DNA of 64,000 bases from NCBI RefSeq assembly GCF_039654945.1, contig NW_027361957.1, forward strand, positions 1,302,001-1,366,000. The letters are read 5' to 3'. The DNA is from Dendrobates tinctorius (Eukaryota). Positions 27,761 to 50,800 of this stretch are shown here, piece after piece. The position numbers and the translations under genes were made by a program. The notes under the pieces are model-generated. The model ran no database searches. It was not told the DNA's origin and saw only the letters and a program-made list of their open reading frames with translations. The first letter of the stretch is position 1, and the number at the start of each line of letters is the position of its first letter.

Positions 27761-28374
27761 ACAGTACATATAACATAGAGTAACATACTTACCAATACTT
27801 GTCACATTGTTCCCCGAAGCCATTGTCTATTCCGGGATAAATATTAACATAACAAACCACAAAAATACTCACCCACGATCCGAAGCAGTCCACGAGTGTG
27901 TCCCACGACGATCTTGGGTAGAGAACTGCAGCATCAGATGATGCTGCCGTTCTCTACGGGCTGCAGGAATCCAATGACGGAAGGTAGGTATCCTTCCGCA
28001 CTGTATTCCTCCGCCACTTAAAAAAAAAAAGTCCCTAGTCTCACTTTATGCCATTGCTGTGTGGGAATTTCCCACACAGCAATGGCATAAAGTGAGACTA
28101 GGGACTTTTTTTTTTTAAGTGGCGGAGGAATACAGTGCGGAAGGATACCTACCTTCCGTCATTGGATTCCTGCAGCCCGTAGAGAACGGCAGCATCATCT
28201 GATGCTGCAGTTCTCTACCCAAGATCGTCGTGGGACACACTCGTGGACGGCTTCGGATCGTGGGTGAGTATTTTTGTGGTTTGTTATGTTAATATTTATC
28301 CCGGAATAGACAATGGCTTCGGGGAACAATGTGACAAGTATTGGTAAGTATGTTACTCTATGTTATATGTACTG

Positions 28375-29311
28375 TATGTCTATGTATGTATTGTATGAAT
28401 GTATTGTATGTATGTAGTATATATGTGGTATGTATGTAGCATGTAGTATGTATGTGGTATGTATGTAGCATGCATGTAGTATGTATGTAGCATGCATGTA
28501 GTATGTATGTAGCATGCATGTTGTATGTATGTAGTATGTATGTAGTATGTATGTAGCATGTATGTAGCATGCAGTATGTATGTAGCATGTATGTAGTATG
28601 TATGTAGTATATATGTAGTATGTATGTAGCATGTAGTATGTATGTAGCATGCATGTAGTATATATGTAGTATGTATGTAGCATGCATGTAGCATGTATGT
28701 AGTATGTAGGTAGTATGTATGTAGCATGCAGCATGTATGTAGTATATATGTAGTATGTATGTAGCATGCATGTAGTATGTATGTAGTATGTATGTATGTA
28801 GCATGCTGTATGTATGTAGCATGTATGTAGTATGTATGTAGTATATATGTAGTATGTATGTAGCATGCATGTAGTATGTATGTAGTATGTATGTAGCATG
28901 CAGTATGTATGTAGCATGTATGTAGTATGTATGTAGTATATATGTAGTATGTATGTAGCATGTAGTATGTATGTAGCATGCATGTAGTATATATGTAGTA
29001 TGTATGTAGCATGCATGTAGCATGTATGTAGTATGTATGTAGTATGTATGTAGCATGCAGCATGTATGTAGTATATATGTAGTATGTATGTAGCATGCAT
29101 GTAGTATGTATGTAGTATGTATGTATGTAGCATGCAGTATGTATGTAGCATGTATGTAGTATGTATGTAGTATATATGTAGTATGTATGCAGCATGCATG
29201 TAGTATGTATGTAGTATGTATGTAGCATGCAGTATGTATGTAGCATGTATGTAGTATGTATGTAGCATGCATGTAGTATGTATGTAGCATGCATGTAGTA
29301 TGTATGTAGTA
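28375..29311. repeat. Compound TGTA/GTA/TGCA satellite, right arm of copy 1
   Basis: Reverse complement of the left array, slightly longer. Confidence 0.95.
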
Positions 29312-30597
29312 TTTTTTTTTTTTTTTTTATTTTTTTTTTTAACATTTAACACATTAGCCGGATGATGGGACTACTACTGTCCCATCATTGGCTAATGTGT
29401 CAATCACTGTCATGGTAGCAGGCATCGCCCGATGGGACTTGTAGTCCCATCGGACGATGCCTGCACAGACCCCCGGAGCCTGCACAGACCACCGGCAGGC
29501 CGGCACAGCCCCCCGGCAGGCCGGCACAGCCCCCCGGAGCCTGCACAGCCCCCCGGCAGGCCGGCACAGCCCCCCGGCAGGCCGGCACAGCCCCCCGGAG
29601 CCTGCACAGACCACCGGCAGGCCGGCACAGCCCACCGGAGCCTGCACAGACCCCCTGGCAGGCCGGCACAGCCCCCCGAAAGGCCCGTACAGACCCCAGA
29701 GAGGCTGTACAAGGGCAGGAAAGGGTTTTTCTTATTCCGATACCGGAAGTCCCATAGACTTGAATGGGACTTCCGGTATCGGAATCGGCGATACCGATAC
29801 TTTTTTTAAAGATCGGCCGATACCATCCGATACGATACTTTGAAGTATCGGACGGTATCGCTCAACTCTACTGTTAATTAAATCATGCTGTTATGGTAGT
29901 AATATTTTTTGTAATGGCTGGCAATTTTTTAAATAGACTATCTATACTAAATAGTGAATCTTACTACAGATGGGCGGACCCATGGATGTTCGGGTCCGGC
30001 GGAATAATTAAAAAAAGTTCGAGTTTGGTTACCAGAACAGTACCAAGACCCAAACCAGGACCCCATTCACTTAAATGGGGGATCAAAGATTGTTGTTTGC
30101 CATGCTGTCATGTGCATGACAGAGGGCAAACACTGCTTGTGATCTGTGGTAAAATCATTACCACAGGTCATATAGCCGCAGTTCCCATGGTGTCAAATGA
30201 CAGCGTGAGCCCGAAACTGTGATCAGAAGTATAAAGTTTATCAGCCAGCCAGGCAAAACTGACAGCTGGGAGCTGCAAACCTCAGCTGTTAGTGTTAGCA
30301 AAGCTTGTTATCAAGAATAGAGGGGTAACCTTGCTGTTTTTTTTAATTAATTAAATAAATAATTAAAAAAATGAAGTGGGGTCTTTTCATTTTTGCCAAC
30401 CAGACTTGGCAAAGCAGATTGCTGTGTGCTGGTATTTTTTAAATGATATATTTAGAGCGTAGGCACCAGCTGATGAATACTCCCATCAGTAACCTCCTGC
30501 TCTCATTATTATTAGTGGCAGCAGGCATAGTCTGATGTGAGCTGTGGTCCCATCAGATAGTGCCAGTGACCGGAGGTAAACTTTATACCTCCGATTA

Positions 30598-47300: not shown

Positions 47301-47854
47301 TTAATTAAATACTGTTTTTATTTGAAAATATTAAATGTATTAAAGTACTTTACTTAAACTTTTATGGCAATTTCCTTAAGGCATATTGAAAATGATTTAA
47401 TATTCTGCATTAACTGAAGTATCAATCTGTTCTCAAAAGATGTGTCCACTAAAGGTCAGAACGAGAAGTTGTTACCAATAGAATGTTTCTAATTTCTATG
47501 ATAAATTATTAGAAGAAGTCTACAGAAGAATCTGTAAAATATCAGTGCATTCAATGATTTTAGAATAGCATCACCTCTTTCCTAGTCTTTGCATGTCTCC
47601 AATTTGGGGATTATAGATGGAAAAGCTTTAACAACCGCTCTTGGGATTTGACAGAGAAGATGACCTATAGCACATTTTTCTATCCAGTAAGGTTACATTA
47701 TCTCTTTATTGACTTTTCAAAGTCTTGACTCTTCTTTTGCCGAAGCCTAAAATATGTATTTAGGAAAAGGTACTGTATGTAGTGTGGTGAAGAATGAAAA
47801 TGTTTTGCAAAAAAAGCTTACACTATTGGGTTGAATTGAAATAATGCTTACAAC

Positions 47855-50800
47855 TAGTGTTGAGCATTCCGATACCGCAAGTATCGGGTATCGGCCGATA
47901 CTTGCTGTATCGGAATTCCGATACCGACTTCCGATATTTTTTCAATATCGGAATTCGGCATCGGAATCGGAAGTTCAGTTGATTGACGGCCTGACGTCAT
48001 CATGATGCGCGGTGTGTGCGCATCATGATGCGCCGTCATTTCGGGCCTTCCGGGGGTCTCTGCCGGCCTGCCGGGGGGCTGTGCTGGCCTGCCGGGGGGC
48101 TGTGTGGACTGCCCGGGGTCTGTACCGGCCTGCCGGGGGGCTGTGCCGGCCTGCCGGTGGTCTGTGCACCCTGTGGGGGTCTGTACCGGCCTGCCGGGGG
48201 GCTGTGCCGGCCTGCCGGGGGGCTGTGCTGATGTCCGGGGGTCTGTGCAAGCATCGTCCGATGGGACTACAAGTCCCATCGGGCGATGCCTGCTACCATG
48301 ACAGTGATTGACACATTAGCCAATGATGGGACAGTAGTAGTCCCATCATCCGGCTAATGTGTTAAATGTTAAAAAAAAAAAAAAAAAATACTACATACAT
48401 ACTACATGCATGCTACATACATACTACATGCTACATACATACTACATATATACTACATACATACTACATACATGCTACATACATACTACATGCATGCTAC
48501 ATACATACTACATGCTACATACATACTACATGCATGCTACATACATACTACATATATACTACATACATGCTACATACATACTGCATGCTACATACATACT
48601 ACATACATACTACATACATACTACATGCATGCTACATACATACTACATATATACTACATGCATGCTACATACATACTACATGCTACATACATACTACATA
48701 TATACTACATACATACTACATACATGCTACATACATACTGCATGCTACATACATACTACATACATACTACATACATACTACATGCATGCTACATACATAC
48801 TACATGCTACATACATACCACATACATACTACATACATACTACATACATACTACATGCTACATACATACTACATATATACTACATACATGCTACATACAT
48901 ACTACATGCTACATACATACCACATACATACTACATACATGCTACATATATACTACATGCATGCTACATACATTCATACAATACATACATAGACATACAG
49001 TACATATAACATAGAGTAACATACTTACCAATACTTGTCACATTGTTCCCCGAAGCCATTGTCTTTTCCGGAATAAATATTAACATAACAAACCACAAAA
49101 ATACTCATCCGAAGCAGTCCACGAGTGTGTCCCATGACGATCTTGGGTAGAGAACTGCAGCATCAGAATTTCCCACACAGCAATGGCATAAAGTGAGACT
49201 AGGGACTTTTTTTTTTTAAGTGGCGGAGGAATACAGTGCGGAAGGATACCTACCTTCCGTCATTGGATTCCTGCAGCCCGTAGAGAACGGCAGCAACAGC
49301 TGATGCTGCAGTTCTCTACCCAAGATCGTCGTGGGACACACTCGTGGACTGCTTCGGATCGTGGGTGAGTATTTTTGTGGTTTGTTATGTTAATATTTAT
49401 TCCGGAAAAGACAATGGCTTCGGGGAACAATGTGACAAGTATTGGTAAGTATGTTACTCTATGTTATATGTACTGTATGTCTATGTATGTATTGTATGAA
49501 TGTATTGTATGTATGTAGTATATATGTGGTATGTATGTAGCATGTAGTATGTATGTAGTATGTATGTAGCATGCATGTAGCATGTAGTATGTATGTAGCA
49601 TGCATGTAGTATATATGTAGTATGTATGTAGCATGCATGTAGTATATATGTAGCATGTATGTAGTATGTATGTGGTATGTATGTAGCATGTAGTATGTAT
49701 GTAGCATGTATGTAGTATATATGTAGTATGTATGTAGCATGTAGTATGTATGTAGTATGTATGTGCTATGTATGTAGCATGTAGTATGTATGTAGCATGC
49801 ATGTAGTATATATGTAGTATGTATGTAGCATGTAGTATGTATGCAGTATGTATGTAGTATGTATGTGGTATGTATGTAGCATGTAGTATGTATGTAGCAT
49901 GCATGTAGTATATATGTAGTATGTAGTATGTATGTAGTATGTATGTGGTATGTATGTAGCATGTAGTATGTATGTAGCATGCATGTAGCACGCATGTAGT
50001 ATGTATGTAGCATGCATGTAGTATGTATGTAGCATGCATGTAGTATGTATGTAGTATGTATGTAGTATGTATATAGCATGCAGTATGTATGTAGCATGTA
50101 TGTAGTATGTATGTAGTATATATGTAGTATGTATGTAGCATGTAGTATGTATGTAGCATGCATGTAGTATATATGTAGTATGTATGTAGCATGCATGTAG
50201 TATGTATGTAGTATGTATGTAGTATGTATGTAGCATGCAGTATGTAGTATATATGTAGTATGTATGTAGCATGCATGTAGTATGTATGTAGCATGTAGTA
50301 TGTATGTAGCATGCATGTAGTATGCATGTAGCATGTATGTAGTATGTATGTAGTATATATGTAGTATGTATGTAGCATGTAATATGTATGTAGCATGCAT
50401 GTAGTATGTATGTAGTATTTTTTTTTTTATTTTTTTTTTTAACATTTAACACATTAGCCGGATGATGGGACTACTACTGTCCCATCATTGGCTAATGTGT
50501 CAATCACTGTCATGGTAGCAGGCATCGCCCGATGGGACTTGTAGTCCCATCGGACGATGCCTGCACAGACCCCCGGAGCCTGCACAGCCCCCCGGCAGGC
50601 CGGCACAGCCCCCCGGAGCCTGCACAGCCCCCCGGCAGGCCGGCACAGCCCCCCGGCAGGCCAGCACAGCCCCCCGGCAGGCCGGCACAGCCCCCCGGAG
50701 CCTGCACAGACCACCGGCAGGCCGGCACAGACCACCGGAGCCTGCACAGACCCCCTGGCAGGCCGGCACAGCCCCCCGAAAGGCCCGTACAGACCCCAGA

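Follow-up and report, generated by a model that had tools for sequence, protein, structure and literature searches.

The stretch of DNA analysed here (the window) covers 64,000 nucleotides of the frog Dendrobates tinctorius (RefSeq assembly GCF_039654945.1, contig NW_027361957.1, positions 1,302,001 to 1,366,000, forward strand) and carries two copies of a transposable element, each of which holds a long palindrome in its interior. We compared the arms of these two palindromes. Within each copy, the inner arms share sequence changes that distinguish them from the arms of the other copy, whereas the arrays at the outer ends of the arms show the opposite pattern. All positions below are those of the window.

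Two copies of a hAT-type element

Both copies lie in the same orientation and have no coding capacity. They are listed here together with the target site duplications (TSDs) that flank them:

26342–29870, + strand: copy 1, non-autonomous hAT-type element, 3529 bp
26334–26341 and 29871–29878: copy 1 TSD, CTGTTAAT, 8 bp, perfect, read directly
47855–50970, + strand: copy 2, same element family as copy 1, 3116 bp
47847–47854 and 50971–50978: copy 2 TSD, CTTACAAC, 8 bp, perfect

The two TSDs differ in sequence (CTGTTAAT versus CTTACAAC), and in both of them the second base is T and the seventh A, matching nTnnnnAn, the target preference of hAT transposons. Each copy starts with TAGTGTTGAGC and ends with GCTCAACTCTA, so that the left end (TAGTGTTGAGC) and the reverse complement of the right end (TAGAGTTGAGC) form an 11-bp terminal inverted repeat (TIR) with 10 of 11 positions matching. 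The subterminal motifs CCGATAC/GTATCGG are numerous in both terminal parts. An 8-bp TSD, the target pattern and a short TIR (10–25 bp) accompanied by subterminal repeats are hallmarks of hAT elements at the sequence level. Because the TSDs are perfect, copy-specific and compatible with nTnnnnAn, and because the TIR matches at 10 of 11 positions, the two copies are best read as independent insertions of one non-coding, non-autonomous hAT-type DNA transposon. Segmental duplication was rejected as their origin, as each copy is bounded by its own perfect 8-bp direct repeat. The termini of the copies are identical, with 0 differences over 189 bp at the 5′ end and 0 over 173 bp at the 3′ end (0/362 in total).

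No third copy of the family was found in the rest of the 64-kb window, where only weak satellite-like matches occur (25422–25494), and a metagenome scan with a pattern spanning the doublet described below gave 0 matches. Another hAT-like element, cut by the window start, ends at 5029–5039 in the same 11-bp tip, GCTCAACTCTA. It contains a BED zinc-finger open reading frame (ORF) at 1260–2246 on the minus strand, which continues in frame past one stop into 3–1259, and internal arrays of 130-bp units (3222–3573) and 217-bp units (3794–4652). A role of this element as the autonomous partner is not supported, since the 11-bp tip alone matches and the subterminal sequence is unrelated. hAT transposases combine a BED finger, an RNase-H-like core and a hAT dimerisation domain; no such dimerisation domain was found within the window.

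Anatomy of the palindrome

The palindrome is internal cargo of the element, with an inner mirror stretch of ~2.7 kb that is nearly spacerless and has a common centre in both copies. From the outside to the centre, each arm consists of a GC-rich 21-mer array, 120 bp of unique sequence, a poly-A tract, an 11-mer satellite of ~0.85–0.9 kb and ~330 bp of unique sequence. The individual parts are as follows (TRF, Tandem Repeats Finder):

26342–26530, + strand: copy 1 5′ terminal part, non-palindromic, with CCGATAC/GTATCGG repeats; 0 differences over 189 bp from copy 2
26531–26735, + strand: copy 1 left GC-rich 21-mer array (TRF), outer, not homogenised; its partner is 29465–29697
26736–28067, + strand: copy 1 left inner arm, a gapless mirror of 28069–29242 with 5 mismatches in the first 1160 nt
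26858–26886, + strand: copy 1 left-arm poly-A
26887–27734, + strand: copy 1 left-arm 11-mer satellite, ATACTACATAC
27735–28067, + strand: copy 1 left-arm inner unique part, 333 bp
28068: copy 1 palindrome centre, a single T within GGGAATTTCCC
28069–29464, + strand: copy 1 right inner arm, carrying the 5 derived single-arm substitutions of this copy and, at the outer end, an additional 62 bp of satellite
29698–29870, + strand: copy 1 3′ terminal part, non-palindromic, not the inverse of the 5′ part; 0 differences over 173 bp from copy 2
48044–48248 and 50565–50797: copy 2 GC-rich 21-mer arrays
48249–49167, + strand: copy 2 left inner arm, shortened by deletions
49166–49169: copy 2 centre-deletion junction with GA microhomology, read directly; the centre T is 49169
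49170–50564, + strand: copy 2 right inner arm, full length

In the two halves of the element, the GC-rich 21-mer arrays (GGCCTGCCGGGGGGCTGTGCC) stand in inverse orientation, and their side-specific variants are nearly identical across copies. As in foldback elements, the arms are made of tandem sub-repeats (11-mer and 21-mer arrays; TRF). The inverted repeats stop short of the element ends, however: the palindrome spans 26531–29697, and the terminal 189 and 173 bp, the 11-bp TIR aside, do not mirror each other. When folded as a single strand, the inner 607 nt are predicted to form one hairpin (−398.5 kcal/mol, z = −69). Smaller local hairpins are nested in each arm, at 27922–27956 (GAGAACTGCAGCATCA..TGATGCTGCCGTTCTC) and 27971–27989 (GGAAGG..CCTTCC); the first of these has acquired two substitutions (49296, 49299) in and beside its loop on the copy 2 right arm.

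Inner arms group by element and outer arrays by side

We compared the four arms present in the window, left and right of copy 1 (1L, 1R) and of copy 2 (2L, 2R), and sorted variable sites into three patterns: by element, by side and cross. A global MAFFT alignment of the full satellite from all four arms was too ambiguous for site counts, and we therefore relied on pairwise alignments that tolerate gaps, on aligning the outer satellite of all four arms and on k-mer sharing. Site patterns and pairwise comparisons are given below:

Inner unique part: 2 columns by element, 0 by side, 0 cross; single-arm changes, 2 substitutions and a 7-bp indel
Outer satellite part (all four arms present): 18 columns by element, 0 by side, 0 cross; single-arm substitutions, 4
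Outer GC-rich arrays: 0 columns by element, 23 by side plus 29 gap columns, 0 cross; single-arm substitutions, 9
Whole-arm pair 1L–1R: 6 mismatches, 2 gaps
Whole-arm pair 2L–2R: 5 mismatches, 8 gaps (deletions in 2L)
Whole-arm pair 1R–2R: 37 mismatches, 14 gaps
Whole-arm pair 1L–2R: 33 mismatches, 15 gaps

Across the inner arms (~1.33 kb), 20 substitution columns thus group by element and none by side or across. Eight changes are exactly mirrored, lying at equal distance (d) from the centre in the independent 1L–2L and 1R–2R alignments; these are indels of 15, 4 and 3 nt and substitutions at d = 1048, 953, 644, 239 and 232. The alignment-free comparison follows the same division, with 208 pair-exclusive 30-mers for 1L+1R and 129 for 2L+2R, against 1 for 1L+2L, 3 for 1R+2R, 32 for 1L+2R and 0 for 1R+2L. 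In copy 1, the switch from by side to by element falls near 26735/29465; in copy 2, it falls near 48248/50565. Beyond it, the arms are only ~75–80% alike in the GC-rich arrays and have not been homogenised; these side-specific arrays form an outer, older layer of the inverted repeat.

Between the copies, non-satellite sequence diverges by ~0.5% and the satellite by ~2.8% plus many small indels. The satellite changes fastest, and so holds most of the concordant differences. In the non-satellite inner sequence, single-arm substitutions are few (~3–5 over ~1,800 arm positions). At this rate, chance should place an identical second change at the mirror position within a copy at <1e-3 per site. Such pairs were seen twice in this sequence and many more times in the satellite.

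The two non-satellite cases form a doublet that the earlier note on this DNA had singled out, as two substitutions common to the arms within a copy and different between copies:

Copy 1 doublet, + strand: A 27829 and G 27836; mirror positions 28307 and 28300
Copy 2 doublet, + strand: T 49065 and A 49072; mirror positions 49408 and 49401

This observation holds on both copies. The A..G state of copy 1 is present on both arms, with GTCTATTCCGGGATAA occurring once on the plus strand at 27825 and once as reverse complement at 28296, and so is the T..A state of copy 2, with GTCTTTTCCGGAATAA once on the plus strand at 49061 and once as reverse complement at 49397. Each of these 16-mers has a single occurrence per arm and none elsewhere in the window. 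Neither site lies in a CpG, and the two substitutions, being 7 bp apart, could by themselves amount to one event. The satellite variant CATGCTGCATGC, likewise reported as confined to copy 1, was recovered at 27072 and 27401 (+) and in mirror image at 28724 and 29053 (−); copy 2 lacks it. Of the broader claim that the arms were homogenised within each copy, the grouping by element is borne out by the 20 versus 0 columns and the eight mirrored changes; its placement at these particular loci is not, given that the copies are separate insertions. Homogenisation is also incomplete, since the copy 1 arms retain 5 mismatches and a 62-bp difference, and the copy 2 arms 4–5 mismatches and ~500 bp of deletions.

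Ancestry of the palindrome and the central deletion in copy 2

The two copies agree in the position of the centre and in the outer limit up to which the arms are nearly identical; the palindrome is therefore ancestral and older than the split of the two lineages. Independent formation of a palindrome in each copy was ruled out by the same two features. Copy 2 has since been modified by deletion. Its left arm ends in ...GCATCAGA and continues directly with ATTTCCC; the missing 128 bp correspond to 27939–28066 of copy 1, lie wholly on one side of the centre and are associated with GA microhomology. Compared with the right arm of the same copy, the left arm further lacks 7 bp as well as 15, 135, 91 and 122 bp of satellite, which brings the total to ~500 bp, all of it on the left. 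The one-sided 128-bp loss is what would be expected as the scar of hairpin or cruciform breakage followed by end joining, and it turns a spacerless palindrome into an interrupted one.

Left–right asymmetry of the arms

Derived states of single-arm substitutions were called with the other copy as outgroup. In the inner arms (26901–29235 and 48424–50382), 1R carries five derived substitutions, 1L none, 2R three and 2L one, a right-to-left ratio of 8:1 (two-sided binomial ~0.04). With the outer arrays included, the ratio is 15:3 (~0.008), although alignment of the arrays may inflate the right-arm count of copy 2. In copy 1, every one of the five arm mismatches has its derived base on the right, four of the changes being transversions, and the left arm of this copy has 0 private 30-mers. 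Directional conversion alone cannot create such an asymmetry, because it removes discordant sites from both arms at an equal rate. The asymmetry may reflect a polarity of replication or repair at palindromes, or it may be due to chance. A bolder proposal, which we regard as doubtful, is that the right arm is periodically resynthesised from the left by a low-fidelity polymerase extending a self-primed fold-back hairpin, with the left arm receiving slippage deletions. One-way rebuilding of this kind would explain the grouping of whole arms by element with a fixed limit, the excess of right-arm substitutions and the left-arm deletions; if it is true, a mobile element would keep a record of the direction in which hairpins are repaired in the germ line of a vertebrate.

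State and abundance of the doublet in read contigs

We placed Logan contigs of ~60–135 nt from four public runs on the 617 bp at 27760–28376; two runs were from the source species (X1, X16) and two from related species (X7, X9). At positions 27829, 27836, 28300 and 28307, no alternative base reaches 5% of depth in X1 or X16. The A..G state of copy 1 is thus the common one, and T..A, which copy 2 carries on both of its arms, is the rare and probably the derived state, with the qualification that depth is summed over all homologous repeats and makes this weak evidence. The regions in common with the related species are 27781–27827 and a central part (~27928–28221 in X7, 27970–28158 in X9). The contigs of these two runs do not cover the doublet and therefore provide no outgroup for it. 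The ‘unique’ inner part is present at very high copy number in the source species (~2000 contigs from one run), and the cargo may derive from an older, abundant hairpin repeat. Many contigs diverge just after 27827.

Concerted evolution of the inner arms and alternative explanations

Because the palindrome is ancestral, sites that group by element imply that sequence was transferred from arm to arm at least once since the lineages split, and we infer at least one such transfer. We consider it probable that the inner arms evolve in concert by templated repair within one molecule, as parts of an ancestral palindrome that is carried as cargo by hAT-type insertions. A change would first arise in one arm and then be copied to the other, using the arm of the same molecule as template. 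Candidates for the repair mechanism presumed to underlie homogenisation are gene conversion between the arms, template switching at a stalled fork and break repair at an extruded hairpin or cruciform. The outer GC-rich arrays would be too diverged to serve as templates and would keep their side-specific sequence; their likeness of ~75–80% plausibly stops heteroduplex formation and sets the limit of homogenisation. Concordant differences are found along the entire inner arm up to a single fixed limit, for which reason one long event per lineage would explain the data as well as many short conversion tracts. The earlier note had proposed either conversion within the palindrome or regeneration through a hairpin; the data uphold at least one arm-to-arm transfer, by either mechanism.

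Several points weigh against concerted evolution by such repair. The comparison is based on two copies instead of a family-wide tree, and the satellite differences are unpolarised, so that all transfers could fall on one lineage. Alignment of the 11-mer array is partly ambiguous; the count of 18 columns may be inflated, and the eight mirrored events are the conservative figure. The copy 1 arms diverge by ~0.45%, which is no lower than the non-satellite divergence between copies (~0.5%), and outside the satellite the case therefore comes down to one doublet. Finally, the read data consist of 60–135-nt contigs, which mostly fit both arms and do not link them, so that polishing effects may have contributed to the concordant bases of the assembly.

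The alternative that survives best, at a little less than even probability, is that the concordance was simply inherited. The source elements or subfamilies would already have been homogenised, and the concordance would be family history, with nothing having happened at the loci in the window. The copies are indeed separate insertions with different TSDs, and identical termini next to satellites that differ by ~2.8% and many indels fit different interiors riding on the same mobile ends. This explanation shifts only the time and place of homogenisation, however, as the arms must still have exchanged sequence in some ancestor after the palindrome had formed. Transfer in source elements before insertion, possibly in one lineage only, may equally be part of concerted evolution by templated repair.

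A second alternative, which we think unlikely, is regeneration of a whole arm from the other in a single event, with single-arm differences representing later mutations or synthesis errors. A nascent strand that passes the centre could fold back and prime itself, either at a replication fork or while the gap left by hAT excision is being repaired; alternatively, a hairpin intermediate could be replicated. By-element differences over the whole inner arm (d = 232 to ~1130) would follow directly, and, with an outer limit common to both copies, a single long event in each lineage is a more parsimonious assumption than numerous short tracts. The perfect register of the copy 1 arms over 1160 nt of fast-changing satellite points the same way, and five of five copy 1 mismatches on the right arm, with no private 30-mers on the left, are expected if right was copied from left. 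Two copies cannot separate one long tract from many short ones, however, and five errors in 1.3 kb are far above known error rates of repair synthesis, which makes later mutations likelier and leaves the 5:0 split weakly significant. Moreover, in established hAT transposition, hairpins form on the flanking donor DNA and not on the element.

An artefact of assembly or polishing, through reads cross-mapped between arms or a palindrome built from fold-back chimeric reads, is very improbable. With arms >99% alike, short reads lack unique placement, and 1665 of 2036 X1 contigs fit two places. Differences should have disappeared if reads had been cross-mapped, yet mismatches confined to one arm and large one-sided deletions persist, the outer arrays remain side-specific, the mirrored differences include indels of 3, 4 and 15 nt, and the copies differ from each other, so that no single consensus was imposed on both. 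A fold-back chimeric read, which would have mirrored the flanks as well, was ruled out by the unlike termini, the proper TSDs and the side-specific outer arrays. Parallel mutation, by chance or at hypermutable mirror sites, would profit from the common sequence context of the arms, in which hotspots would coincide, but it can be practically discounted in view of the 20 concordant columns and mirrored indels against 0 columns by side, the opposite pattern of the outer arrays and the position of both doublet sites outside CpG.

Surroundings of the two copies

Other mobile elements are densely packed in the remainder of the window. Between the hAT-type copies, two adjacent sets of Ty3/gypsy-type ORFs (34926–43258, minus strand) encode protease, reverse transcriptase, RNase H and integrase, with a chromodomain in one set. 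Two 1.2-kb copies of a Tc1/mariner element, 95% alike, lie at 19150–20344 and 45136–46333; the second has Sleeping-Beauty-type helix–turn–helix domains in the ORF 45225–45995. A GC-rich tandem array at 12119–12462, with 18/54-bp units followed by 13/26-bp GGGTGTAATGAGA-type repeats, is unrelated to the palindromes. A search with Rfam at gathering thresholds found no RNA family anywhere in the window.

Comparison with known palindromes and foldback elements

In vertebrate genomes, long palindromes that lack a spacer are regarded as short-lived. It is already known that palindrome arms and foldback repeats can evolve in concert, and the element described here is a clean new example in a new setting, as internal cargo of a hAT-type transposon.

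In sex-chromosome palindromes (P1–P8 of the human Y and those of the primate X), arm-to-arm gene conversion keeps the arms >99% alike (PMC3723533, PMC8600007, PMC8981503). As in the frog element, the arms evolve together, exchange takes place within the palindrome, and homogenisation stops where the homology of the arms stops. Sex-chromosome palindromes differ in being fixed, gene-bearing chromosomal structures with arms of 9 kb to >1 Mb and kilobase spacers, whereas the hAT palindrome has 1.33-kb arms, a 1-nt centre and mostly satellite sequence, and is the cargo of a transposon.

Foldback-type transposons (Drosophila FB, Galileo and Tetris, and the Tm1/Phantom MULEs) share with the present element long inverted arms of tandem repeats and arrays that grow and shrink independently in each arm. 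Within one Galileo copy, identity between the two long inverted repeats is 98–100%, and the tandem repeats of each expand on their own (PMC3573991). Of three complete Tetris copies, two have TIR repeats that group by element, for which the authors give homogenisation as the reason (PMC4079207). In these transposons, however, the long inverted repeats are the termini, whereas here the palindrome is internal and the termini (189 and 173 bp) are unlike each other apart from the 11-bp TIR. The superfamily differs as well, as the present element is of hAT type (8-bp TSD) and not a P element or a MULE.

The central deletion of copy 2 resembles the ‘revision’ of transgene palindromes in the mouse, where, in the centre-break model, one-sided deletions at the centre stabilise the palindrome. 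Palindrome revision by central deletion has been reviewed (PMC7999016). In copy 2, too, the 128-bp loss is one-sided, lies beside the centre, involves a 2-bp microhomology and results in a safer, interrupted palindrome; unlike in the mouse, the evidence comes from a single natural copy. Plastid inverted repeats undergo copy correction. In C. elegans, long inverted repeats are actively maintained (PMC1803023). Both show concerted evolution through intramolecular recombination, as proposed here, and both differ in that they bear genes, contain spacers and are not mobile.

Through its hAT-type carrier, the palindrome is spread as a family, with many independent copies of one palindrome at different loci. 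Each copy is a replicate experiment on the rate of exchange between arms, on the reach of tracts (with a limit at ~75–80% arm identity) and on disarming, as by the 128-bp deletion. Together with a long-read assembly, the whole family could yield rates of palindrome conversion and deletion in the frog germ line without a transgene. Compared with the systems above, the value of the element thus lies in the system that it offers, not in a new principle.

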